Source: Neoechinorhynchus agilis (lineage: Eukaryota; Animalia; Acanthocephala). From it: DNA of 64,000 bases. Position 1 is the first letter of the stretch. Each line of letters begins with the position of its first letter. Positions 454-16,560 of this stretch are shown here, one piece after another. The notes under the pieces were generated by a model. That model was not told the DNA's origin. It saw nothing but the letters and a program-made list of their open reading frames with translations, and made no database searches. The stretch is from positions 4,215,489 to 4,279,488 of the forward strand of contig CM121342.1 of assembly GCA_051530055.1 (NCBI GenBank), in the 5' to 3' direction. The position numbers and the translations under genes are program-made.

Positions 454-930
454 TTAGTTTTCTTTAAAGTATTCTTCAACCGCTTGAGAATCAATACCAA
501 ATTCACTGAGATCGGGTAGATGAGCTTCGTCCAATCTAAACCAATGAGCGCAATAACACCGCTTGGTTTCCCCTCGATAAATCTTCATGTATTTGACATG
601 GCATTGTTCCTCCTCGCAAACGCAACCCAAAACCGATTCGTCGTGAAAAGAAGTGACCACATTGGGATCTTCACGGGTACTTATTGCTTTTCTTTTGATT
701 TGAATTGGTCGCATTGGATTAGCGATTCCTCTGAGCCGTAAAGCAACATCGAGTCGTGCCATTCCATGCAAAGTATCCCATGGATCGAGCACACCATTAA
801 CCTGGCGATCATCGAATTTCGCCAGTACAGGACGTCTAAAGACCACTGGCGGAGAAGACTCCGGCGATTTTCGAAAATAACTTCGGAATCGATCAATCAG
901 AGCTCCACGATTCACCAAAGTAACTCTCAT
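454..930 (-). CDS. COX5B: Cytochrome c oxidase subunit 5B (zinc-binding), intronless
   Basis: ATG at 930 with an Arg-rich, presequence-like N-terminus. C-terminal TREDPNVVTS..LGCVCEEE..YRGETKRCYCAHWFRL matches the COX5B pattern with CxC and CxC zinc ligands. Confidence 0.87.
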   Translation of the reverse strand: MRVTLVNRGALIDRFRSYFRKSPESSPPVVFRRPVLAKFDDRQVNGVLDPWDTLHGMARLDVALRLRGIANPMRPIQIKRKAISTREDPNVVTSFHDESVLGCVCEEEQCHVKYMKIYRGETKRCYCAHWFRLDEAHLPDLSEFGIDSQAVEEYFKEN

Positions 931-1052
931 CCTCCTTTTTTTAATAACTCAGCACATCGCAAAGCGCCAGGAAATGTCTTATTCTTTCGAAGTTCATCGA
1001 AACAATGAGTATTTCCGATCGAGAAATACTCGTGTACTCATGGATCGCGAAA

Positions 1053-3266
1053 TTAAAAACATATTTGGAATCAGTGTCATTGGTCGAAGCACGAAATCTA
1101 GGACGAAATAAAGAAAATATTTGGAATTCTCAAAAAAGTGCTAGGACCTAGAGGACTATTAGCAAAAAAATCATTTTTCTCTATATTTTGCTTAAAAATG
1201 TATTTGGAATCAGTGTCATTGGTCGAAGCACGAAATCTAGGACGAAATAAAGAAAATATTTGGAATTCTCACAAAAGTGCTACGACCTAGAGGACTATTA
1301 GCAAAAAAATCATTTTTCTCTATATTTTGCTTAAAAACATATTTGGAATCAGTGTCATTGGTCGAAGCACGAAATCTAGGACGAAATAAAGAAAATATTT
1401 GGAATTCTCACAAAAGTGCTACGACCTAGAGGACTATTAGCAAAAAAATCATTTTTCTCTATATTTTGCTTAAAAACATATTTGGAATCAGTGTCATTGG
1501 TCGAAGCACGAAATCTAGGACGAAATAAAGAAAATATTTGGAATTCTCACAAAAGTGCTACGACCTAGAGGACTATTAGCAAAAAAATCATTTTTCTCTA
1601 TATTTTGCTTAAAAACATATTTGGAATCAGTGTCATTGGTCGAAGCACGAAATCTAGGACGAAATAAAGAAAATATTTGGAATTCTCACAAAAGTGCTAC
1701 GACCTAGAGGACTATTAGCAAAAAAATCATTTTTCTCTATATTTTGCTTAAAAACATATTTGGAATCAGTGTCATTGGTCGAAGCACGAAATCTAGGACG
1801 AAATAAAGAAAATATTTGGAATTCTCACAAAAGTGCTACGACCTAGAGGACTATTAGCAAAAAAATCATTTTTCTCTATATTTTGCTTAAAAACATATTT
1901 GGAATCAGTGTCATTGGTCGAAGCACGAAATCTAGGACGAAATAAAGAAAATATTTGGAATTCTCACAAAAGTGCTACGACCTAGAGGACTATTAGCAAA
2001 AAAATCATTTTTCTCTATATTTTGCTTAAAAACATATTTGGAATCAGTGTCATTGGTCGAAGCACGAAATCTAGGACGAAATAAAGAAAATATTTGGAAT
2101 TCTCACAAAAGTGCTACGACCTAGAGGACTATTAGCAAAAAAATCATTTTTCTCTATATTTTGCTTAAAAACATATTTGGAATCAGTGTCATTGGTCGAA
2201 GCACGAAATCTAGGACGAAATAAAGAAAATATTTGGAATTCTCACAAAAGTGCTACGACCTAGAGGACTATTAGCAAAAAATCATTTTTCTCTATATTTT
2301 GTAAAAAATGAATCAGTGTCATTGTCGAAGCACGAAATCTAGGACGAAATAAAGAAAATATTTGGAATTTCACAAAAGTGCTACGACCTAGAGGACTATT
2401 AGCGAAAAAATCATTTTTCTCTATATTTTGCTTAAAAACATATTTGGAATCAGTGTCATTGTTCGAAGCACGAAATCTAGGACGAAATAAAGAAAATATT
2501 TGGAATTTTCACAAAAGTGCTACGACCTAGAGGACTATTAGCGAAAAAATCATTTTTCTCTATATTTTGCTTAAAAACATATTTGGAATCAGTGTCATTG
2601 TTCGAAGCACGAAATCTAGGACGAAATAAAGAAAATATTTGGAATTTTCACAAAAGTCCTACGACCTAGAGGACTATTAGCGAAAAAATCATTTTTCTCT
2701 ATATTTTGCTTAAAAACATATTTGGAATCAGTGTCATTGTTCGAAGCACGAAATCTAGGACGAAATAAAGAAAATATTTGGAATTTTCACAAAAGTCCTA
2801 CGACCTAGAGGACTATTAGCGAAAAAATCATTTTTCTCTATATTTTGCTTAAAAACATATTTGGAATCAGTGTCATTGTTCGAAGCACGAAATCTAGGAC
2901 GAAATAAAGAAAATATTTGGAATTTTCACAAAAGTGCTACGACCTAGAGGACTATTAGCGAAAAAATCATTTTTCTCTATATTTTGCTTAAAAACATATT
3001 TGGAATCAGTGTCATTGGTCGAAGCACGAAATCTAGGACGAAATAAAGAAAATATTTGGAATTCTCACAAAAGTGCTACGACCTAGAGGACTATTAGCAA
3101 AAAAATCATTTTTCTCTATATTTTGCTTAAAAACATATTTGGAATCAGTGTCATTGGTCGAAGCACGAAATCTAGGACGAAATAAAGAAAATATTTGGAA
3201 TTCTCAAAAAAGTGCTAGGACCTAGAGGACTATTAGCAAAAAAATCATTTTTCTCTATATTTTGCT
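1053..3266. repeat. Tandem array A1: 139-bp unit x16
   Basis: Unit ttaaaaacatatttggaatcagtgtcattggtcgaagcacg... recurs at 1053, 1192, 1331 etc. One unit near 2300 has a ~10-nt deletion; units ~10-14 share a variant block. Confidence 0.98.
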
Positions 3267-3429
3267 CTCATCAAAAACAATTTGGTAGAAGTCTACGCGA
3301 ATTTTTAAGTATTTAACGTCTCCAAACACATTAGAAAATTGGCAAAAGATTTATTTCGTTAACGAGAAAATTGCAAGTCATTTTTTCCGTCCGACTCTCA
3401 ATAAACCCAGACGACTTATTTTGTTCCTC

Positions 3430-4029
3430 ATGAAACCAACAAAACAATTTGGTTCAGAGTTCACTGTATCGGAAACATCACTAAAACCTTTGACTATTTT
3501 AAGCGCTCGAAAATCAATTCAGTTGATCCAGGAAAGTAAATCGATCGGAACCAGAACTCTACATGAACTCGCTGATCAAAGCGAAAAGTTTAGGCGGATT
3601 CAAAGCGACCTGGACTGCGTCGATCAATCATTAAGCCAAACAAAACGCCACATCAGGAGGCTTCGTTGGAGAAATGTTCTCCCGTTCACTTTAATGAGTT
3701 TATTTAGTTGCGAAAAATGGATGTGGTTCATCTGTGGAAGTTGCTTGAACCGCCGATCAAAGTCAAAACAACCAATCAAAATAATCAAATTACGGAGTAT
3801 CTCAGAACCAAATTTGTTTGGTACCGAGTCAACGGACCAACTGAACTCCGCCCTTGTAGAAATGTCCAAGGGACTCGCAGGGCTAAAATCAATGGCAATG
3901 GAAATGAACGCCGAATTAAACGACCACAGCGAGTTGATCGATTCGACAAACATTCAAATCGACCAAACGAATAAAGACCTCGATGACCAGTGCCGTGATT
4001 TGATGAGAATCTCAAAGCGGAGGTTTTAG
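3430..4029 (+). CDS. SNAP-25/23/29-family Qbc-SNARE, intronless
   Basis: Two SNARE heptad motifs (SIQLIQESKSIGTRTLHELADQSEKFRRI; LVEMSKGLAGLKSMAMEMNAELNDHSELID) joined by a Cys-containing linker. ATG at 3430. Confidence 0.8.
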   Translation: MKPTKQFGSEFTVSETSLKPLTILSARKSIQLIQESKSIGTRTLHELADQSEKFRRIQSDLDCVDQSLSQTKRHIRRLRWRNVLPFTLMSLFSCEKWMWFICGSCLNRRSKSKQPIKIIKLRSISEPNLFGTESTDQLNSALVEMSKGLAGLKSMAMEMNAELNDHSELIDSTNIQIDQTNKDLDDQCRDLMRISKRRF

Positions 4030-4273
4030 TCGGCAACGATCTTGTGGATTTGTAAGTGGAAAATTAATGGCTTTTTTGGTAAATATTTGAAGGAATTTAT
4101 CATCAAACGTGAAAGTGTGAAGAGCAGAGAATAAATTTATCAATAGCGATTTGTTGAAATGTTTTTAATGTCAAAAGTGTTCGCATTTGTTAATACTCAC
4201 AAAGAAAAAGGTTGATAGTTTGCTCCATTCCTCGGAGCGATAAGACAAATCGAATATTCACCCTAAAAGGCAA

Positions 4274-5245
4274 AATCATTCTCGATCATTAACCTCAAAA
4301 TGAAATCCTTTTTATTGATCTCACTCATCGCTGCCCTCGCATTCTGCGCTCTCAGTGCCGCCGCCGCTGCAAGAAAAGATGCAAAATGGGTATCAGAGGA
4401 CGATCTCGACAAATCTTTGGTGGAGTTTGCCGTCAAAAGCGGAAAAGTTCCAATGAAAGTTGAACGTGGCAAGAGATGTGAGTTATAAGATGTCTTAACC
4501 TTTTAACAACTTTATCTTTAGTCTTCTTTGGACCTGGAATATTTCTGATCTACATTTTGTTCCTGCTTCCGTTCCTGATGGGCGGCTGTGGTGGATTTGG
4601 CGGTCCTGGACTCTGTGGATCGCCGCCCTGTGGACCACCTCAATGCTGTCCAACTTTTTAAACATCCTTAACCGATAGCTTAGTGTAGACGGGCGGAGAA
4701 ATAGTTTCTGCCTACCTTTAATTGTAGGCTTCTTAATTACCCAATAAAACTTTACATTGAAGAAATATTCATGGGAGCCATTAATAATTTATTATAAAGC
4801 AAAAATTAAACCGATTTGATCGAATTGTGAACAAACCTTGAAGTGTCCGATTTGTTTTTAAAGACGCGACCGCAAGCTGAACAACAGTCAAAAAAATCAG
4901 AGCGAATTTCGTTCGATTCCAGAAAGTTTTGCACTTTAACCATCTTTTCGGATTTCATCGATCAACTTTTTTTCATTAAAATTGAATTTAACACGCGTCT
5001 CCAAATTTGCTTTTCTCGATTACTTTTATTTATTGGAGATCGATCGGATCGTTTTAAAGTCAATATTCGTCAACGGAAAGTAGTTTGTCGGTATTTTAAG
5101 AGTAAATTTAATTGTTAATAAACCAGGAAATTCTACGATTCGCATAACAAAATGCTCAAATTATTTAATCGCTTTTGCTTCATCAATGTTCTTTAGATTA
5201 AATGAGAGATTTTCCAGGAGGTGAAAGTTTAATGGGAGTTTCGGT
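4274..5245. repeat. 972-bp block duplicated in inverted orientation at 14066-15037
   Basis: Near-identical reverse-complement match with sharp ends (aatcattctcg... and ...gggagtttcggt). Confidence 0.95.
4300..4661 (+). CDS. Secreted prepropeptide, copy 1 (105 aa; exons 4300-4477 and 4522-4661)
   Basis: GTGAGT donor at 4478 and TTTAG acceptor at 4521 give a 44-nt intron. Spliced product: signal peptide MKSFLLISLIAALAFCALSAAAA, then RK..GKR, then FFFGPGIFLIYILFLLPFLMGGCGGFGGPGLCGSPPCGPPQCCPTF*. AATAAA at 4743. Differences from copy 2 in exon 1 are all synonymous. Confidence 0.82.
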
Positions 5246-6790
5246 TAGAGACTGCCGCCAATCGAGTTCGGTTCACCGGGTCACGAGAATCTGAAATTAA
5301 AGAGTTATGAATTCTCGCTACCCGGGGTGAGTCCCAAAAAGGATTGTTTGCAACCATTGACGGGTACCTGCTCGCTGCCTGAATCTCCACACCAAAGATA
5401 AAGAGCCTCCAGGAAACCTTCATTTAAAGTGTAATTCTCGTCAAGAACGAATTTAACAACTTTTCGACTTGCTTCATACGATCCCAAATAAGAGGCGATC
5501 AGAGAAATATCGGCTGCTTTTCGGATAGCAAAACCTCCAAGACCGCAGAGGCAAGGACGTTTGACGCCGGGTCTCATCCGGCAGCTGAATATTTAGAATT
5601 TTCTCGAGAGAGGCTTTCACCGTCTCGTCTAATTTTGCCAGCTTATCCTTATGTCTAAAAAAAGGTGTTGTGCGCAGCTTATACAGCAGTTTTGGAATAA
5701 AGAGGATGTTCTTGATCAGGAACAGAGTTTCGTGTAAAGATAATTCATCAATTCGTTCGCACAACACTGAAAGTTGCGGTTTGAAGATTGGTAATCTCTG
5801 CTTAAACATTAGAATCAAAAATGCAACTTCCTAGAATACTCAACTGGTCTTAAGTGATCAATTCTATCCCGGGGGCAAGGTTCTGAAAATCTTTCACGAT
5901 AGTTTGCCTGGACGCTCCACGTTCATCACTAATATCTCGCATTTCGCAGCATTCAATTCAATGAAAAAATTTCTCCTCCACGAATGTCTCCAAATCGAGC
6001 AGTACAACAGAGACGTTGCCCCAGAGCTTGACATCATCCAAGTAAGAGCCCTTAAAGATGGATTGGAGAGTGCGCGACGGGATTGACTGCGAGTGAGAAG
6101 GCTATTGGGCCCAAAGGATCTCCTTGTTGAAATCCTGTTTCTGACCACGAAACTGACTTTTTCGAGAAAATCTGCTCAGTGAACTGTGTTGAATGAATTT
6201 TTGAAATTTTCCGGTGATGAACGTGCGGAGTGAATGAACAATCGCATCTACGCCCCAAGGTGTACAGAAGTCTGAGTAGGCCGAAGCAGTTTCCCTCCTT
6301 TTTCCGAGATCCATTTATTTAACATTTTTGATGTTAAGCGGCGCAGAGTTTTTCCAATTGCAATGCGACGGATTCCGACCTTTCTTTTTCGCGGCGACAC
6401 ACAAAGATGCGCCGAAAAATAGCTCAATTGCTTTCGGAATCAACTCTCCCCCTGCGAATTGGTCGACTAAGCGTGCCAATGCATCTTCTGGGGACTGGGC
6501 AGCGTCACTTACTGAAAAGGAAGTCACATCCTTTAGGTGCTGGGGCCGGAGTCCGTCAAGCCCTTTAGCTGATCCGTTAGAAAATGTTGAGTTTGTCATC
6601 TTCACTTCTGATTTCGATGATAAAACATAAGGAATCGTATCGAAGGACGAGGATTTCACGAAATACTTTAGACCGTCGCAACAGTTTCTTCGTTATTTTT
6701 GGCGAGACTGTCCATTGATGATAAAAGACGAGCTGCTCCTCTGACATCTCCGTCTGCGAGCTTCGAAGAAACGCGTATATTTTGGAATTC
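5246..6790 (-). mobile_element. Degenerate CRE-clade non-LTR retrotransposon remnant (RT region)
   Basis: Frameshifted fragments encode GLDGLRPQHLKD, FFGASLC, GFQQGDPLGPIAFSL, SYLDD (6033-6044), ELNAAKCE and FIPKLLYKLRT. Bases 5246-5660 closely match 17811-18210. Confidence 0.9.
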
Positions 6791-7154
6791 AACTAATTTT
6801 TAGGGCAGATTTGGGAATTTAAAACATCAGTTTTCACTCGTAAAATATCGAGATGTTCGCTCAGAGTTGAGTTGTTGTTTAGAATATAGAAATGAAGTCC
6901 TCGAATAGGACGGGTTTTTAAAAAACGACCTAAATAATTGAACAATCACGATGCGAAATAGTAATCTTTTTAGCTAAGAATTTATTAGGTGCGTGCTTTG
7001 ATGACTAATTACTGAAAAAAACTTCAACGAATTGAATACGCAAGTTTGTCAATACGAAGAAAAAGGTTGATAGTTTGCTCCCTTCCTCGGAGCGATAAGA
7101 CAAATCGAATATTCACCCTAAAAGGCAAAATCATTCTCGATCATTAACCTCAAA

Positions 7155-7546
7155 ATGAAATCCTTTTTATTGATCTCACTCATTGCCGCCCTCGCATTTT
7201 GCGCTCTCAGTGCCGCCGCCGCTGCAAGGAAGGATGCAAAATGGGTATCAGAGGACGATCTCGACAAATCTTTGGTGGAGTTTGCCGTCAAAAGCGGAAA
7301 AGTGCCAATGAAAGTTGAACGTGGCAAGAGATGTGAGTTATAAGATGTCTTAACCTTTTAACAACTTTATCTTTAGTCTTCTTTGGACCTGGAATATTTC
7401 TGATCTACATTTTGTTCCTGCTTCCGTTCCTGATGGGCGGCTGTGGTGGATTTGGCGGTCCTGGACTCTGTGGATCGCCGCCCTGTGGACCAGCGCAGTG
7501 CTGCCAGCCGTGCTGCCCGCTTCCATGTTGCCCTGTCCCGCAATAG
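7155..7546 (+). CDS. Secreted prepropeptide, copy 2 (115 aa; exons 7155-7332 and 7377-7546), long Cys tail
   Basis: Same exon 1 protein and identical 44-nt intron as copy 1. C-terminus is ...CGSPPCGPAQCCQPCCPLPCCPVPQ*. Shares ~95 nt of upstream sequence with copy 1. Confidence 0.82.
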
Positions 7547-7991
7547 ATAGCTATTAGATTCAATCGATTTTAGTTGCGTAGAATAAATAGTGGTTTATCG
7601 TAGTTTTGTACGGGATGCCCGGATTCAGAGATTAAAAATACGCTCAGAAATGCAAATTTTATCCGAGCAAAGGTGATTTTTTCTTTTCGTTCTTAATGAT
7701 AACTTTATCCGTTCTTAAAGCATCACTCAACGAGGCATAAAAGTTGGTCGTTTTTCTGCTCCTATTTTTTGGTACCTTTCCAATAATCTCATTTATGCCA
7801 ATTTGCCTATTTAGTGTTTAGGACATTAATAATCGGATCTATCAGATCTCAGAGTTTTTTTGGAGAAATCGAAAAAGCGTAATAAAAACGTTTTCAAACT
7901 AACTTTTAATTTAAAATTTGTCCGAAAAATCGTTTGAGTGAAGATCAAGGAATTGGTTTAAACATTTTAAAAAGAGAATTTTAATAAAGAT

Positions 7992-8049
7992 TGGCATTCG
8001 CGACACAAAGTTTCAAAGTGAATTTTCATTGTATCGGTCATTGGTGCCA
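7992..8049 (-). promoter_or_regulatory. Type II SECIS element in the GPX4 3' UTR
   Basis: Minus strand reads tggcacca-ATGA-ccgatacaatg-AAAA-ttcactttgaa-actttgtgtcgc-GA-atgcca. It has the AUGA/GA core, an 11-nt spacing to the AAR motif, a stem cgatacaa/ttgtgtcg, an apical mini-stem ttca/tgaa and a lower helix tggca/tgcca. Confidence 0.9.
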
Positions 8050-8086
8050 GTTCTTTTTTGAAATTTCTCTACATTCGCGAGTACGT

Positions 8087-8803
8087 TTAATTGTCCAATA
8101 GATCCTTCAAGTCACCTTCAATGTTCTAAAGAAAAAAACCTGAAAGTTTGAAAAAACATTTTCGAGAATGACCTTTGAGTCGACGTTTGTTCCGTATCGT
8201 TTCATTGGTTTGCCTTGTTTATTAATAAGAAACTTTGTAAAGTTCCATTTAACAAAACTAAACGGAATAAATGCGACTGCATGAAATAAATGGAAACTCC
8301 AACCTGCCCAAGAAACCGCCCGTTTGAGATTTTAGATACTTAAAGAGCGGGTGCGCTTTCGATCCGTTCACTTCTATTTTTGAGAACATATCGAAAGTAA
8401 CGCCCCTTTCCGCCGCAAAAGCCTTTATCTCAGATTCGGGCCAAGGTTCCTAAATTAATATCTTTTTCAGTACCAAGGATGCAATTTCGGAATTTCTTTA
8501 TTACCTGCGAACCGAATTGGTTGCACGGGAACGCAAGGATCCGGAGACCACTCGAAGAATACTTATTGAACAATTCTTGAAGGTGATTGTACTCGCGAGC
8601 AGTAACGCCTCATTTACACGCAACGTTCAATATTATACAGACTTTTCCTCTGGAGAAAACAGAACAACATCTCAAAAGAAAGTTGAACCTTCCAGTTACC
8701 TGTATCTCTCGAGATCCACTAAATTGCCGTCAATGTCCATGGCAGCAAAGTCGTAGATGCTTTTGGCTTTCTTGTAATCCAAATTCAGTTTGTCCTCAGA
8801 CAT
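8087..8803 (-). CDS. GPX4: Phospholipid-hydroperoxide glutathione peroxidase, selenoprotein (172 aa, 5 exons: 8803-8700, 8649-8505, 8449-8304, 8257-8173, 8125-8087)
   Basis: Spliced frame gives [31 protein letters not shown](TGA 8612-8610)-[28 protein letters not shown] and KWNFTKFLI. All intron phases agree (519 nt) and a SECIS lies downstream. An extra upstream exon is possible. Confidence 0.95.
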
Positions 8804-9362
8804 CGCAAAAGACAATCTCTGAAAAACGAGGAGGAAGGCAAGCAATGTTTTTGTACTCACGGCGCAAACTCGTTGATAACGAGCAAAACGACGGCTTGCA
8901 CGTGGGATTTATTATTTCGCCATTTTTATCGGTTGCAAAGTTCGTTTTGAACGTTTATTCACTTGATTTGTTCGTTTGAGTAAGTTAACATCATAATTCT
9001 GGTTTAATACAAAAAAAAGAACGTTTCAAACTAAAGATTTTTTGTCTTCATTTTAATCTCCGTCGATTTTAATGCTGTTAACAACGCCAAATCTTCTCGA
9101 TTCTCATAAAACCGTAAATAAGAAGTTTTCCCCCACGGTGTTCGTCGCTTCTTTTCCAAAACGGCCTCAATTTCTAATAACTGTCTTATTTCATTGTTTA
9201 TTAGAAACAACAACGGAGTAAAAATCTTATTTCTGAACTTATTTGATTGTAAAAATGTCATAGTATTAAAAAAAACTAAATCAGATAGTTGTTAAATCTT
9301 AATAATGCCCAGTTTTGTTTTAAAAACAATCCTTTTTACCTATAGATCATCTCTCTCTTTCA

Positions 9363-10289
9363 TCAGGCGTTTCCTTTCCTCGGTTCAGGTGATAAAGCAT
9401 TGGCCACCATCTCATAGACGACAAAAGTGATACAACTGGCAGGAGTGACCCTGACTAAAGTCGGTAAAAGTCCTTTATAAAGAGCAAAGAATCCTTCTGT
9501 TCGAAGAAGATCATCGATTGCATGCATGGTGCCTCGGTAATGCCGATGTTGTTGTTGCAATCGTGATTTAATGACTTGATGGGGATAAAGAGCAACGGCT
9601 GCCAGTATTTTGGACACTCCTGAACAAATGGCATAAATAATAGGGCCCATCATAGCATCCTTGTCCACTCCATAGTACAAACGAAACGATTGCTTCAAGT
9701 ATTCATAAGCACCAAACTGGATTGTACCATGGAAAGTTCCAAAGAACGCAGGTACGAGTCCACCGTATAAAGCAGTGAATCCTTCTTCCCTTACGACCTT
9801 AACCATTCCACCGAATACACCACTATATCGATTTGTATCCCATTTGTATTGGAGACAAAGACGAGTCTTCATAACCCAAATCGGATTGGTCACTAGCATG
9901 GTCAATACTCCTGCCAATGTGGCGTTTTGCATGTGAGTGATCGAGCTGAGTTGCCGAGTAGGATCGGATGATTGGTAATAGGATCTTAGAGAATTGTAAA
10001 CTAAAAAGTAGAGACCCCATGAAAGTCCAGCTCCTATCAGACTTGGATAAACTCCTTGATATAAAGCACCTATTCCACCTTCGATGTATATTTTGCGGAG
10101 TGCGTCAACAAAACCACTGTACCGAGGACGAATTACTTTGCTTTTCTTAGCTGCTGAAGTCCCTTCGTCGACTTGCATTCGAACCTTGACCAGATCAAGA
10201 GGGTGCAAAACGAGAGTGGATACTAGACCACCAGCTATTCCGGCAATAAAGTGACCAATCTTCAAGTGTCCAAACAAAGTAGAACGCAT
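9363..10289 (-). CDS. SLC25A32: Mitochondrial folate/FAD carrier (SLC25 family), intronless
   Basis: 308 aa with three carrier repeats and PxDxxKxR-type motifs (HPLDLVKVRMQ, NPIWVMKTRLCLQ, YPHQVIKSRLQ). The NPIWVxKTR motif is typical of the folate carrier. Confidence 0.88.
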   Translation of the reverse strand: MRSTLFGHLKIGHFIAGIAGGLVSTLVLHPLDLVKVRMQVDEGTSAAKKSKVIRPRYSGFVDALRKIYIEGGIGALYQGVYPSLIGAGLSWGLYFLVYNSLRSYYQSSDPTRQLSSITHMQNATLAGVLTMLVTNPIWVMKTRLCLQYKWDTNRYSGVFGGMVKVVREEGFTALYGGLVPAFFGTFHGTIQFGAYEYLKQSFRLYYGVDKDAMMGPIIYAICSGVSKILAAVALYPHQVIKSRLQQQHRHYRGTMHAIDDLLRTEGFFALYKGLLPTLVRVTPASCITFVVYEMVANALSPEPRKGNA

Positions 10290-10304
10290 TTTTTTATTTG
10301 TAGT

Positions 10305-11315
10305 GATAATCTACCAAAATCGAGTGGGAAATTGAGGCGGAAAAGTGGAAAAACAAACGAGAATTAGAATAATTTCTCATTTTGTGAGTCGAAAGAGCAA
10401 AAAAAAGTTGAAATTCTCCTTTAACAAAAAGGATCCAAAGAATATTCCGAAATATTTCCTCAAAAGTTATAATCAACTAAGAAAATCGAGTGGGAAATTG
10501 AGGTGGAAAAGTAGAAAAATAAACGAGAATTTTAACAATTTCTCATTTTGTGAGTCGATGGGTGAAAAAAAGGTTGAAATTCTCCTTTAAGAAGAAGGAT
10601 CCAACGAATATTCCGAAATATTTCCTCAAAAGTTATAATCAACTAAGAAAATCGAGTGGGAAATTGAGGTGGAAAAGTAGAAAAACAAACGAGAATTTAA
10701 ACAATTTCTCATTTTGTGAGTAGAAAGAGCAAAAAAAGGTTGAAATTCTCCTTTAACAAGAAGGATCCAAAGAATATTCCGAAATATTTCCTCAAAAGTT
10801 ATAATCAACTAAGAAAATCGAGTGGGAAATTCAGGCGGAAAAGTAGAAAAACAAACGAGAATTAGAACAATTTCTCATTTTGTGAGTCGATAGGAGAAAA
10901 AAAGGTTGAAATTCTCCTTTAAGAAGAAGGATCCAAAGAATATTCCAATATTTAATCAACTAAGAAAATCGATTGGGAAATTGAGGCGGAAAAGTAGAAA
11001 AACAAACGAGAATTAGAACAATTTCTCATTTTGTGAGTCGAAAGACCAAAAAAAGGTTGAAATTCTCCTTTAAGAAGAAGGACCCAAAGATTATTCCGAA
11101 ATATTTCCTCAAAAGTGATAATCAACTAAGAAAATCGAGTGGGAAATTAAGGCGGAAAAGTAGAAAAACAAACGAGAATTAGAACAATTTCTCATTTTGT
11201 GAGTAGAAAGAGCAAAAAAGGTTGAAATTCTCCTTTAAGAAGGACCCATAGAATAATCTCCAATATTTAATCAACTGAGAAAATCGAGTGGGAAATTCAG
11301 GCGGAAAAGTGGAAC
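10305..11315. repeat. Tandem array A2: ~166-bp unit x~6.1
   Basis: aatcaactaagaaaatcgagtgggaaatt recurs at 10471, 10637, 10803, 10954, 11120 and 11269; two units are ~150 bp. Confidence 0.96.
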
Positions 11316-11447
11316 CAACAAACGGACAAACGCAAGAATTTCTAAGTTTCTTTCGTTTTTGTCATTGAAATTAAAGTTCTTGAGATTCTCACTCGGATTA
11401 AGGTCTCGATTTTTCCTGCGAAACAATTGAATTGACCAAAAACGAAT

Positions 11448-14065
11448 ATGAGGAAATCAGACGATGGATATAGCGACGGATCAGATTCACCTCCCAGCAC
11501 TATACCTCCAAGAAGGCTCAGGACGATCTCAGCATCGGATAGGTTTTGCAGAAATTCCAAATTACGTCACAATGTGTTCAAATCGCCTACAATCGACGCT
11601 GGTGACGCAGATAATTTGAACGCGCCACTTATCGATCATAATCAACCTGAGAAGACCAACGCTGCCGGGCTCCCTTGCTTCTCTACTGGTTTGTGTCCGT
11701 TTTGCGGTAGGTCTTTTAAATTAACCAATCTGGGGGTTTTGTTTGTCCATGGTCCCCGAGATCTCCGCTGTAGTGGGTCTGGTTCTCCACCACAATTAAC
11801 CGAACCGTTCGTGCCTGAGACCCCTCAGATCACCACTGATTCTATTTCGATACCTGATATCGTGCGGTTTCTGCCCAGGAGCGTCCTGAAACGGATCTCT
11901 AAAGGCGAGCGATATCTGGTCGCCAAAGCATTTACGGGATTCCTCAACGAATGCCATCAAAGGAACCACGTCTCTTCGCTTTCCCACGCTTAGTCCTCTG
12001 CACCAGCGGTGATTCTGGGGTGTCTTTGACATCAACAATCAAGGAAAGGTTGGCCTCCTTTGAACAGACATTTAACGATTTTGAAAGGAATCTCATCGAG
12101 GTTCGTAAGGGACGCACGAAGGAAGAGTTTCGCTGCCGTTTTTCAAAACGATCACTGACTGAGCGTGTTTCTTCGAAGGGGGCTGTTCGGTTATTGTCAT
12201 CCTCCGACAGTTTCGCAAAAGGAGACAGCGAGACGCTACAAATACTCCGGTCGAAGCACCCATGTAGTAGCGGAAGTTTTGAAATTCCATCTCCTCCCAT
12301 ACAAGACAGGACGCCCACTCAAATTTCAGAGTTACAAAAGGCAATCTCATCTTTTGCAAATGGTTCGGGTAACGGGCTTGACGGACTAAGACCTCAGCAC
12401 CTAAAGGACTTTACAACTGGTGAAGCAGCTTTCTCGAATAGTCGACCGCCTGTCTGGAGAGGACCTGAATCCCGTTGCAAAAGACCTATTTTTCGGAGCA
12501 TTATTATGTGCCTTCACAGAAAAAGGAGGTGCGATTGGTCCCATCGCCGTATCTTCGACGACACGCCGACTCGCAGGAAAAATTATCTGTAAACGTATTA
12601 CAGAGAAAACCGGGCAGCAACTTCGCCCAGTCCAACTGGGCTGCTGCGGGGCGGAAGCTATTGTCCACTCGCTCCGAAACTTCACTGCAAGGAGCTCAGA
12701 GTCGTGCTTGATTCTTAAGTGTGATTTTTCAGAATGCCTTTAACTCTCTCAATAGAGAAACCATGTTCTGCGCAATTAGGGATCATGCCCTAGAAGCCCT
12801 CCAGTATTTTCTCAATGCCTTCGCGACGGCGACTGCTTTGCTTTTCGAAGACCACCTCATTTGGTCCGAAAGAGGAGTGCAGCAAGGAGATCCTCTCGGT
12901 CCAATTGCATTCTCCCTAACAGTAAATCCGATAGCGCATTCTCTCCAACGCTACGCCCGGAGGTGATCCCTCCGTTGTATTGCGCGATTTGGAGACGCTG
13001 ATTAGGGAGACCTCGAAGATGGGCATTGAGCTTAATGCTGGAAAATGTGAGCTCCTTGTATTGAATATTGGAGACGCCGCCAAAGTCAAAGAACTAATGG
13101 CTGGGTTCGAGGCCGTAGCTCCAGGCCTGAAACTCGTGACTCTGGAACAACTCAGCCTCCTGGGCAGTTGCGTCTTCGATTCAAATGTGGAAGATGAGAT
13201 CGGCCATATCATACCGAAACTTTCGTTGCTGTGCGATAGGGTGAGCGCTCTCTCGGCTCATGAAGCGTTATTTCTGATAAAGAACGCACTCTTCATCCCC
13301 AAATTATTGTACAAAGTTCGCACAGCAACATTTTTCAAACATAAGGAAGGATTGGCTAAGCTCGACGGCAAGGTGAGGGCTTGTCTCGAGCGTATTTTAA
13401 ATGTCCAGCTCTCAGATGAGGCGTGGCGACAAGCTTCTTTGCCTGTGTCATCTGGGGGATTGGGAATTCGGGCACTAGTGGACCTTGCTTTGCCGGACTT
13501 TTTTGGATCGTTTGAGGGGAGCCTATCAGTCTCGAAGAACATTTTGAAGGAAAAGTTGTGTCTTGACCGGGATTTCGTGGTGGCGGTTGAGGAATGGTGC
13601 CAGCAGACAGGCGCTAACCATGTTTCCGTGAATGGCCTCAGACAGTCGATCTGGGACGGACCTCCCGCAGCGAGAGCTCATAGCTCTCTACTTTCAGGTT
13701 CTCGCGATGGGGTCGTCCGAGCTAGACTGTTGGAAGTTTCAACACGAGAATCTGGGCGTGGTTGGAGGCTGTTCCTCTGGCATCAGTGGGAACTCTTCTC
13801 ACTGATGAGGTAACGAGGATCGCAGTATCCTTAAGACTTGGTCGCCCGATATGCACGCCCCATCGCTGTCGATGTGGGTCTTTGGTTGATGCTTTCGGGC
13901 GACACGGTCTCGTCTGCCGAAAGTCAGGAGGAAGGTTCTCACGCCATTCTGAAATCAATAACGCAATTTCTCGAGCGTTGAGAACGGCGAACTTCCCGAA
14001 CATCCTGGAACCCGCCCACCTCTGTAGACTAGACGGCCGTAGGCCCGATAGAATTTCGGTCTTTG
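11448..14065 (+). mobile_element. Near-full-length but inactivated CRE-clade non-LTR retrotransposon (zinc finger, RT, CCHC, truncated restriction-like endonuclease)
   Basis: N-terminal CPFC..HGP..CSGSG finger; GLDGLRPQHL; DFQNAFNSL; GVQQGDPLGP; CRCG..GRHGLVC; RHSEINN..EP..DGRRPD. There are at least 5 frameshifts, the YLDD segment is missing at ~12945 and the element is cut at 14065. Confidence 0.93.
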
Positions 14066-15037
14066 ACCGAAACTCCCATTAAACTTTCACCTCCTGGAAA
14101 ATCTCTGATTTAATCTAAAGAACATTGATGAAGCAAAAGCGATTAAATAATTTGAGCATTTTGTTATGCTAATCGTAGAATTTCCTGGTTTATTTACAAT
14201 TAAATTTACTCTTAAAATACCGACAAACTACTTTCCGTTGACGAATATTGACTTTAAAACGATCCGATCGATCTCCAATAAATAAAAGTAATCGAGAAAA
14301 GCAAATTTGGAGACGCGTGTTAAATTCAATTTTAATGAAAAAAAGTTGATCGATGAAATCCGAAAAGATGGTTAAAGTGCAAAACTTTCTTGAATCGAAC
14401 GAAATTCGCTCTGATTTTTTTGACTGTTGATCAGCTTGCGGTCGCGTCTTTAAAAACAAATCGGGCACTTCAAGGTTTGTTCACAATTCGATCAAAACGG
14501 TTTAATTTTTGCTTTATAATAAATTATTAATGGCTCCCATGAATATTTCTTCAATGTAAAGTTTTATTGGGTAATTAAGAAGCCTACAATTAAAGGTAGG
14601 CAGAAACTATTTCTCCGCCCGTCTACACTAAGCTATCGGTTAAGGATGTTTAAAAAGTTGGACAGCATTGAGGTGGTCCACAGGGCGGCGATCCACAGAG
14701 TCCAGGACCGCCAAATCCACCACAGCCGCCGATCAGGAACGGAAGCAGGAACAAAATGTAGATTAGAAATATTCCAGGTCCAAAGAAGACTAAAGATAAA
14801 GTTGTTAAAAGGTTAAGACATCTTATAACTCACATCTCTTGCCACGTTCAACTTTCATTGGCACTTTTCCGCTTTTGACGGCAAACTCCACCAAAGATTT
14901 GTCGAGATCGTCCTCTGATACCCATTTTGCATCTTTTCTTGCAGCGGCGGCGGCACTGAGAGTGCAGAATGCGAGGGCGGCAATGAGTGAGATCAATAAA
15001 AAGGATTTCATTTTGAGGTTAATGATCGAGAATGATT
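14066..15037. repeat. Inverted copy of the 972-bp block 4274-5245
   Basis: Reverse-complement near-identity, including the peptide gene with its intron. Confidence 0.95.
14650..15011 (-). CDS. Secreted prepropeptide, copy 3 (105 aa; exons 15011-14834 and 14789-14650)
   Basis: Intact frame and 44-nt intron. Two replacements versus copy 1 (A>T in the signal peptide, M>I after the hydrophobic segment). Only 26 nt of the shared upstream sequence is retained. Confidence 0.75.
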
Positions 15038-15693
15038 GTCCTATCGCTTTCGACGGCAGACAATCAAGCGATTGGTTGAATTGTTTTTAGTTCAACATAC
15101 AAATCGACGTTCAAAAACGATCAGAGCGATCTTTTTATTTAATAAATAGATTTTCGGCATTTTAAATTGGGTTACAATTAGCATTCACGGCGAAGAATAC
15201 TTACAATAAATTGGAAAACATCCGGATTATTGTTTTAGACTTAAAAGTTTACTAGTCGATATGACCGGAGTTGGCAACTTGATTTAAATGCTATGAATTT
15301 GAGTTATGCCCTCATTTTTATTTATTTTTTGCGCCATATACAACTAAATCTTCAAACATTTGTTTGGTAGAACCATTTTAGAAACTTTTAAGAGCCATTA
15401 ATTTTCTTTCTTCGGAAAAAGATTCATCTTTTGTACCATTGAGACGATTGCTTTTAGGCGTTACAAACACTACTTTTCCCCCCTTGCTATTCGACTTCCA
15501 TATTTTGATTAAAATCTATCATTGGAGACAGATCATCTCGATCGCAATAAGAGCCGAACTGATCGACGTCCGTAATTCCGATCACGGCTGTCAGATTAAG
15601 CCAAAATCAGTTCCAAAGTCTCATTTCTGTTCCGCATACAATGCTGATGCGATCCTTATCAGCGAATTGTTACTGATAAATGTTTATTTTTTT

Positions 15694-16560
15694 TTAATAA
15701 TTGATTCCCGGATAAATTCTGAACATGAAGTTCTATTTAAACTCTAAAAAGTACGATCTTTGAATTCTTATAAAATGGCTTCCCAATTCGGAACTTTAAA
15801 GAAAGATTCTAGATTTCGATGGTTTAATAATTGATTCCCGGATAAATTCTGAACATGAAGTTCTATTTAAACTCTAAAAAGTACGATCTTTGAATTCTTA
15901 TAAAATGGCTTCCCAATTCGGAACTTTAAAGAAAGATTCTAGATTTCGATGGTTTAATAATTGATTTCCGGATAAATTCTGAATATGAAGTTCTATTTAA
16001 ACACTAAAAAGTACGATCTTTGAATTCTTATAAAATGGCTTCTCCATTCGGAACTTTAAAGAAAGATTCTAGATTTCGATGGTTTAATAATCGATTTCCG
16101 GATAAATTCTGAATATGAAGTTCTATTTAAACTCTAAAAAGTACGATCTTTGAATTCTTATAAAATGGCTTCTCCATTCGGAACTTTAAAGAAAGATTCT
16201 AGATTTCGATGGTTTAATAATCGATTTCCGGATAAATTCTGAATATGAAGTTCTATTTAAACTCTAAAAAGTACGATCTTTGAATTCTTATAAAATGGCT
16301 TCCCAATTCGGAACTTTAAAGAAAGATTCTAGATTTCGATGGTTTAATAATTGATTCCCGGATAAATTCTGAATATGAAGTTCTATTTGAGCTCTAAAAA
16401 GTACGATCTTTGAATTCTTATAAAATGGCTTCCCAATTCGGAACTTTAAAGAAAGATTCTAGATTTCGATGGTTTAATAATCGATTTCCGGATAAATTCT
16501 GAATATGAAGTTCTATCTAAACACTAAAAAGTACGATCTTTGAATTCTTATAAAATGGCT
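15694..16560. repeat. Tandem array A3: 130-bp unit x~6.7
   Basis: t(t/c)gatt(c/t)ccggataaattctgaa recurs at 15701, 15831, 15961, 16091, 16221, 16351 and 16481. A degenerate completion of the last unit follows a ~35-nt insertion. Confidence 0.97.

Follow-up and report, generated by a model that had tools for sequence, protein, structure and literature searches.

How many genes, and of what kind, underlie the short open reading frames (ORFs) that recur in a 64,000-nucleotide (nt) stretch of the genome of the acanthocephalan fish parasite Neoechinorhynchus agilis (contig CM121342.1, positions 4,215,489 to 4,279,488 of the forward strand; hereafter, the window)? An earlier reading of these letters (the original prediction) proposed a three-copy family encoding an unrecognised secreted prepropeptide, with an intron of 44 nt, dibasic and amidation sites, a hydrophobic segment and a Gly-Cys-Pro tail. 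The three copies were found where it had placed them, at 4300-4661 (+), 7155-7546 (+) and 15011-14650 (-), but three is too low a count: a search of the whole assembly yielded 14 intact members, distributed in five subfamilies over five genomic sites, plus two relics. We regard them as a well-supported orphan gene family, apparently of the secretory-prepropeptide kind and with an unusual architecture, whose gene models are public but unnamed.

The gene family and its protein plan

The assembly of N. agilis comprises 46.2 Mb in 102 contigs, with 13,655 genes (PMC12690905), and was searched successively with the DNA, with the protein of copy 2 (P0002) and with a profile of the family. The window copies constitute subfamily A; the remaining subfamilies, B to E, and the relics are listed in Table 1.

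The predicted architecture was borne out: after a putative signal peptide come a charged peptide that terminates in G-K-R, a hydrophobic segment and a Gly/Cys/Pro tail. By inspection only, all 14 proteins begin with M-[K/R/Q], followed by 12-20 hydrophobic residues and by small ones (e.g. AAA) before the polar part. Eight residues are invariant (M1, W30, E33, P51, G57, K58, F61 and F67, in P0002 numbering). The charged module, taken to begin one residue ahead of the invariant Trp and to end one residue ahead of the invariant Gly, has exactly 28 residues in 14 of 14 genes; 12-16 of these are charged, and the module follows the pattern [K/Q]W-x-x-E-[D/E]-..-[K/R]-[V/I]-P-[K/M]-[K/M]-[V/I]-x-x from its first residues to its last. 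The Gly-Lys that comes next is invariant, and all subfamilies but D continue it with Arg. An Arg also precedes it in A and B, where the resulting R-G-K-R is a full furin-type consensus. Gly-Lys and the 28-residue module are the conserved core of the family. The dibasic 'RK' proposed on the N-terminal side of the module is not conserved.

The tails have 24-56 residues, start with [F/W]FF, contain no acidic and 0-2 basic residues, and are rich in Phe, Trp, Pro, Gly and Cys. The Gly-Cys-Pro tail of the original prediction is present in subfamily A, although it is one type among several, which include GMP[C/Y] repeats, GGYGG and pure Phe/Trp/Pro/Gly. The CC-rich ending CCQPCCPLPCCPVPQ occurs in copy 2 only, whereas copies 1 and 3 finish in PPQCCPTF.

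Database and profile searches gave no match to any characterised family. Nothing exceeded the cut-off in Pfam with the exons and six database proteins as queries, and a PDB sequence profile search returned no relative (best E 0.47). Word matching with exon 1 and with the family profile against 5.8 billion proteins retrieved N. agilis only, and a HMMER profile run against 1.84 billion cluster representatives retrieved four clusters, all from N. agilis. The ESM Atlas, searched with P0001 and P0005, gave no usable match, its top score (0.79, for an oomycete 'glycine-rich protein' cluster) being within noise. The sub-threshold Pfam candidates DUF4971, PepSY_2 and ETRAMP were rejected as signal-peptide or charge noise. 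Within these libraries the family is limited to N. agilis, and it may really be limited to acanthocephalans, bearing in mind that secreted proteins which are short and evolve fast easily escape detection and that the presence of other acanthocephalans in the libraries is uncertain. The exclusion of minicollagens in the original prediction still stands, as the tails have neither the CxxxCxxxCxxxCxxxCC spacing nor Gly-X-Y repeats, and the organism is an acanthocephalan, not a cnidarian. We also discarded cationic antimicrobial peptides, the tails being uncharged.

Splicing and selection

The GT-AG intron of 44 nt predicted at 4478-4521 is supported, and is common to the three copies, in phase 1. 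The ORF list shows only stubs of 62 amino acids (aa) because the unspliced frame stops three codons into the intron, after CEL. The spliced product originally proposed was right in its overall sequence, but omitted a Met (Ile in copy 3) between PFL and GGCGG.

Support for the splice junction comes from the other subfamilies. The genes of subfamilies C, D and E are uninterrupted ORFs that align without gaps across ...G-K-(R)|[F/W]-F-F, the point at which the A and B exons are joined; since they read straight through the predicted junction, they support the A/B splice. The intron of subfamily B has the same phase and position as that of A, but differs from it in length (48 versus 44 nt) and, save for the splice signals, in sequence, while the flanking codons are conserved. 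The family thus offers, with its intron-bearing and intronless paralogues, a clean in-genome control for the predicted intron.

A protein-database search with exon 1 alone as query retrieved two GenBank models. KAL7670607.1 (P0001), annotated as 'hypothetical protein ACOME3_005543 [Neoechinorhynchus agilis]' (105 aa), is the exact spliced product of copy 3, and its cluster mate KAL7670604.1 (P0002), a 'hypothetical protein' of 115 aa, is that of copy 2; the cluster that holds both contains no model of copy 1. Full-length sequences used in the analysis (P0001, P0002 and P0006) all came from database matches of this sort. These two models use the junction GKR|FFFGPG, as predicted, and come from an annotation made by BRAKER with mRNA-seq evidence (PMC12690905). 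The predicted splice is therefore backed by intronless paralogues, by the B intron at the same site and by RNA-seq-informed gene models. Calling the family 'unrecognised' was correct in that its gene models are unnamed and match no characterised family, but not in that GenBank already holds two of its spliced models. The genome paper has no word on these genes, nor on signal peptides, secreted proteins, neuropeptides or eggshell proteins (PMC12690905). An exact-product look-up of six family proteins in public assemblies, which perhaps do not cover N. agilis records, found no spliced transcript contigs.

The B intron (L004:1546-1593, C1 ~11.455 Mb; twin in L005) has a further property: its 48 nt are a multiple of three and free of stops. 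An unspliced message would consequently give an open protein of 130 aa, with an insert of 16 residues exactly at G-K-R / FFF.

To what extent are these sequences constrained as proteins? Exon 1 of copies 1 and 2 differs at six sites, all six synonymous, as the original prediction had noted. Over the coding part common to the three copies, seven sites differ synonymously and two by replacement (copy 3 carries both of the latter, A17T and M/I), an excess of synonymous changes with P ~0.001 (a binomial estimate that assumes about one quarter of random changes to be synonymous). When A is compared with B, synonymous sites have reached saturation (proportion of synonymous differences, pS, 0.77), with nonsynonymous divergence (dN) of 0.51 for the signal peptide, 0.25 for the charged module region and 0.155 for the opening 22 codons of exon 2. 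This saturation alongside a dN of 0.15-0.34 indicates a real protein under purifying selection, in agreement with the claim made from the window copies. Among the three recent copies of subfamily E, the module shows one replacement, and the tail four replacements and a 4-codon indel. Judged by these substitution patterns, the family is one of real protein-coding genes under long-term constraint.

Acanthocephalans are parasites of fish and livestock with strongly reduced genomes (PMC12690905). The persistence in such a genome of 14 intact, selected genes of secreted type and without relatives suggests a lineage-specific role, for instance in host interaction, in egg envelopes or copulatory cement, or in signalling.

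Fate of the precursor

The reading that we favour, albeit tentatively, is that the family encodes secretory precursors cut by a kexin/furin-type convertase at Gly-Lys-(Arg). The signal peptide would bring the protein, of about 100 residues, into the endoplasmic reticulum, and the uncharged aromatic/Gly/Pro/Cys tail would keep the precursor at a membrane or in an aggregate until it is cut. Cleavage after G-K-R would separate the N-terminal charged peptide from the tail; the basic residues would then be trimmed off, and the exposed Gly could become a C-terminal amide on the 28-residue module. The tail would remain in place after the cut, possibly cross-linked through its Cys residues or bearing lipid on them. 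We infer from the sequence that G-K-R is cleaved, that the module may be amidated and what would become of the tail, and either the N-terminal module or the tail may be the active product. We take the 28-residue module to be a specific functional element, and the tail to be its compositionally constrained hydrophobic partner.

We favour convertase processing because the invariant Gly is hard to explain otherwise, because the tails of subfamilies D and E make poor membrane helices and because the enzymes are present. We also count in its favour that the stops of the pseudogene (relic 1) fall exactly on the Gly and the Arg of G-K-R. The enzyme search covered convertases and peptidylglycine alpha-hydroxylating monooxygenase (PHM). 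It identified a PHM-like gene in which a signal peptide directly precedes a copper type II monooxygenase domain, with no DOMON between them; the best solved-structure matches of its ORF L044:1336-1914(-) are PHM, with E 5e-9. Complete kexin-type convertase ORFs, with S8 and P domain, are also encoded. With a PHM-like gene and many convertases encoded, the processing route is therefore available in N. agilis.

The number of convertases is itself unusual. Over the whole 46-Mb genome there are 40 matches above cut-off to P_proprotein (PF01483) and 74 exon-level matches to Peptidase_S8, and many of the genes are near-identical, with two exons and open frames of ~188 and 356 aa. Animals usually carry only a handful of such convertases. 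A second, interrupted PHM-like match was also detected (Table 1).

Several observations weigh against convertase processing. In subfamily D the site is G-K-F, with a single basic residue only. On the N-terminal side of the module, subfamilies A, B, D and E have a lone Lys ahead of the invariant Trp and C has K-P-Q-W, so that no N-terminal cleavage site appears clearly conserved. Basic residues beside an aromatic belt also have the look of a membrane-water interface, and G-K-R-[F/W]FF need not be a cleavage site. Each subfamily consists of 2-4 near-identical gene copies, which fits abundant structural or defence products more than peptide hormones. The calls of signal peptide and topology come from inspection plus a simple sum, and the AlphaFold2 model (9-sequence alignment) is of low confidence, with a predicted local distance difference test (pLDDT) score of 54.5, and below 50 in the tail. 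A more specific version of convertase processing, in which a conserved amidated 28-mer would form the outer part of a tiny tail-held protein and be freed by the expanded convertases, as a lineage-specific signalling or host-interaction system of acanthocephalans with an undescribed type of precursor, seems to us distinctly doubtful.

The main rival, and a serious one, is that these are uncleaved, small type I single-pass membrane proteins, with the module as a short ectodomain, the Cys-rich end in the cytoplasm and perhaps lipidated, and G-K-R plus [F/W]FF as a membrane-interface motif; we consider this possible, if on balance unlikely. Subfamilies A, B and C have a stretch of 16-20 residues rich in Leu, Ile and Phe, and of all parts compared between A and B, the first part of the hydrophobic segment evolves most slowly (dN 0.155). 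Insertion energies, summed over the best 19-residue window independently of position, with scale values of Hessa et al. (2005) and indicative only, were -1.9 to +0.1 for A and B and a borderline +1.2 for C. The low-confidence AlphaFold model likewise places a helix at residues 63-79, over the A-type hydrophobic stretch, besides a signal helix and a short helix in the module. The CC pairs close to the C-terminus (PCC, IPCC) and a weak, sub-threshold likeness to ETRAMP (16.8 bits against a cut-off of 29.1) also agree with a membrane protein. Conversely, the sums rise to +6.4 to +6.7 in D and +8.5 to +13.7 in E because of the 5-6 prolines that these tails hold, along with 2-4 Gly, in 24-31 residues. 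As an indication, subfamilies A-C could thus plausibly form a classical transmembrane helix and subfamilies D and E could not, and the Pro-rich tails of the latter disfavour a classical membrane anchor across the whole family. The distribution of charges does not fit either, since the basic residues would lie on the luminal side of the segment and leave 0-2 on the cytoplasmic flank, the opposite of the positive-inside rule. Finally, an anchor has no need of an invariant Gly just before basic residues.

Anchoring by glycosylphosphatidylinositol (GPI) was set aside because, by inspection, it appears to fit poorly: A-C have 20-37 Gly/Cys/Pro residues beyond the hydrophobic stretch, and in D and E, where the stretch is terminal, there is no spacer from D/N-G-K and the Lys would occupy omega+2.

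It is also conceivable, but in our view improbable, that the tail is the product, as an abundant hydrophobic material or a membrane-active peptide (egg-envelope, copulatory-cement, hook, surface-coat or defence), and that the module is a solubilising and sorting propeptide cut off by the convertase. In composition, GGYGGFRGYGGYGHY, the GPGxGMP[C/Y] repeats and CCQPCCPLPCC seem similar to structural peptides that can be cross-linked or to defence peptides rich in glycine; the tails vary strongly next to a conserved upstream part, and the near-identical copies in each subfamily suggest a need for high output. Acanthocephalan males produce cement, and females very many shelled eggs (PMC12690905). 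Nevertheless, if the module served for solubility only, one would not expect an exact length of 28 residues and invariant positions to persist across saturated divergence, and the tails are short and nearly chargeless, unlike most antimicrobial peptides.

That the copies are non-functional, as chance ORFs or decaying fragments carried by neighbouring retrotransposons, is scarcely credible: they adjoin reverse-transcriptase fragments, and the promoter of copy 3 may be missing because its block has only 26 nt upstream of the ATG in common with that of copy 1, but purifying selection is strong, the 14 intact members persist in five diverged subfamilies at five sites, the intron position is conserved and AATAAA lies downstream, and true pseudogenes of the family look different, with stops and frameshifts. 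Chance ORFs in particular are refuted by the selection tests.

Genomic setting and known systems

The window has ~38% GC and reads as eukaryotic DNA with short introns. Its three gene copies lie in duplicated blocks, and the repeat arms around them are well past chance expectation (Table 1). The blocks of copies 1 and 2 have ~100 nt upstream of the ATG in common, and their homology stops within the tail-coding part. Fragments of non-LTR (long terminal repeat) retrotransposon ORFs, of reverse-transcriptase type, abut the ends of the duplicated blocks; the RVT_1 match in one of them is sub-threshold, and two inverted stretches, I3 and I4, agree with each other at 75-78%. The neighbouring genes comprise a glutathione peroxidase, a mitochondrial carrier and a SNAP-type SNARE-like ORF. 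An array of a 166-nt unit lies directly upstream of the mitochondrial carrier gene, and a 130-nt unit is repeated elsewhere in the window.

Table 1. Positions of the window copies, of the family elsewhere in the genome, of candidate processing enzymes and of neighbouring features (numbers without prefix are window positions).
Feature	Position	Strand	Details
Copy 1 exon 1	4300-4477	+	direct reading; colinear with intronless paralogues
Copy 1 signal peptide (by inspection)	4300-4371	+	24 codons, then RKDA
Copy 1 conserved 28-residue module, K29-R56	4384-4467	+	
Copy 1 G-K-R	4468-4476	+	split Phe codon follows, first base at 4477
Copy 1 intron	4478-4521	+	phase 1, 44 nt, GTGAGT...TTTAG
Copy 1 exon 2	4522-4661	+	FFFGPGIFLIYILFLLPFLM, then GGCGGFGGPGLCGSPPCGPPQCCPTF, then TAA (4659-4661)
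Copy 1 AATAAA	4743-4748	+	likely polyadenylation signal; direct reading
Copy 2 exon 1	7155-7332	+	protein as in copy 1; 6 synonymous differences
Copy 2 intron	7333-7376	+	same sequence as copy 1 intron
Copy 2 exon 2	7377-7546	+	longer tail, ...CGPAQCCQPCCPLPCCPVPQ; TAG at 7544-7546
Copy 2 AATAAA	7582-7587	+	
Copy 3 exon 1	15011-14834	-	A17T relative to copies 1 and 2
Copy 3 intron	14833-14790	-	same sequence as introns of copies 1 and 2
Copy 3 exon 2	14789-14650	-	M to I after PFL; stop at 14652-14650
Copy 3 AATAAA	14568-14563	-	
Inverted repeat, copy 1 and copy 3 blocks	4274-5252 and 14059-15037		979 nt, 98%
Direct repeat, copy 1 and copy 2 blocks	4199 to ~4640 and 7054 to ~7495		97% identical; 4199-4498 / 7054-7353, running on to ~4640 / ~7495
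Subfamily A, 3 genes	this window		44-nt intron; tail: Leu/Ile/Phe stretch, GGCGGFGGPGLCGSPPCGP, and finally a Cys-Pro end, short or long
Subfamily B, 2 genes, head-to-head	C1 at 11.45 Mb		48-nt intron, same position; P0006, 114 aa; tail: A-like Leu/Ile/Phe stretch, then GPGxGMP[C/Y] repeats
Subfamily C, 2 genes	C2 at 3.27 and 3.42 Mb		intronless; P0004, 117 aa; tail: Leu-rich stretch, then GGGCCGGYGGFRGYGGYGHY
Subfamily D, 4 genes	C2 at 3.28-3.35 Mb		intronless; P0003, 106 aa; tail: FFFWG[FI]VPFFPWGFLYPFYYPCFRP[WF]IPCCF
Subfamily E, 3 genes	C1 at 7.39-7.41 Mb		intronless; P0005, 110 aa; tail: WFFGFWPFFPWGFFPFFGPFGPWW, or variant with CCGR
Relic 1, pseudogene	C1:9062351-9062482	-	TGA stops exactly at Gly and Arg of G-K-R; frameshift upstream, frame lost
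Relic 2, 5' fragment of E-type gene	C2:4838600-4838722	-	signal peptide and N-terminal region
PHM-like gene	C1:5751823-5752149; locus L044:1336-1914 and 843-1160	-	
Second PHM-like match	C3:225419-225721		interrupted
Convertase loci (examples)	C1:15937054-15937296; C1:17.50-18.05 Mb; C3:7127182-7148573; C77; C97		
SNAP-type SNARE-like ORF	3421-4029	+	
Retrotransposon ORF fragments	5305-6659	-	non-LTR, reverse-transcriptase type
Retrotransposon ORF fragments	11448-14082	+	non-LTR, reverse-transcriptase type
RVT_1 match	12721-12966		sub-threshold
Glutathione peroxidase	8258-8860	-	split ORFs; GSHPx 30.7 bits
Mitochondrial carrier	9363-10289	-	intronless, 308 aa; Mito_carr E 4e-67
166-nt unit in tandem	10306-11308		4-5 copies, 85-96% identical
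130-nt unit	15693-15952		two perfect copies, head-to-tail

How does the family compare with known systems? The ETRAMP proteins of Plasmodium (PF09716) are also parasite proteins of ~100 residues with a signal peptide (putative in the family) and short charged and hydrophobic segments, but only one of the six family proteins examined matches them (P0003, of subfamily D), at 16.8 bits and E 0.007, below the gathering cut-off of 29.1, which does not amount to membership.

Pulmonary surfactant protein C is a very hydrophobic lipopeptide with a palmitoylated Pro-Cys-Cys-Pro, released from a precursor. The family resembles it in having a short, very hydrophobic peptide with an adjacent CC motif (IPCC, PCCP) that would be excised from a larger precursor. 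There is, however, no homology between them: surfactant protein C is a type II protein without a cleaved signal peptide and of opposite orientation, whereas the family has no BRICHOS domain and, in its D and E tails, has aromatic residues and much Pro in place of poly-Val/Leu.

Precursors of frog-skin antimicrobial peptides and cone-snail toxins have a conserved prepro region, a basic cleavage site and a hypervariable C-terminal product. The same order of (putative) signal, conserved spacer up to Lys-Arg and variable C-terminal peptide is seen here, in a multigene family with recent duplicates. Unlike in those precursors, conservation is lower in the signal peptide than in the spacer (dN 0.51 versus 0.25), and the C-terminal peptides, with 0-2 basic and no acidic residues, are not cationic and have no fixed cysteine framework.

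The precursors of amidated peptide hormones and neuropeptides share with the family the signal peptide (putative in the family), a conserved, fixed-length peptide with Gly and basic residues directly after it, and a genome that encodes a PHM-like amidating enzyme and convertases. The family differs from them in having no sequence relative, an extremely hydrophobic, uncharged tail in place of acidic spacers, and an unclear N-terminal cut site, and in amplifying near-identical genes instead of peptide repeats within one gene. Teneurin C-terminal associated peptide and phoenixin (SMIM20) are proposed to be cut from membrane proteins beside an amidation motif of Gly-Lys-Arg type, and likewise combine a putative amidated peptide with a membrane-type hydrophobic segment in one protein. 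The sequences are unrelated, and the hydrophobic segment is N-terminal in those proteins, whereas in the family it is directly C-terminal, abutting the presumed cleavage site. If both fragments are made, this arrangement of an amidation-type signal directly against an uncharged aromatic tail would be an unusual packaging of a peptide.

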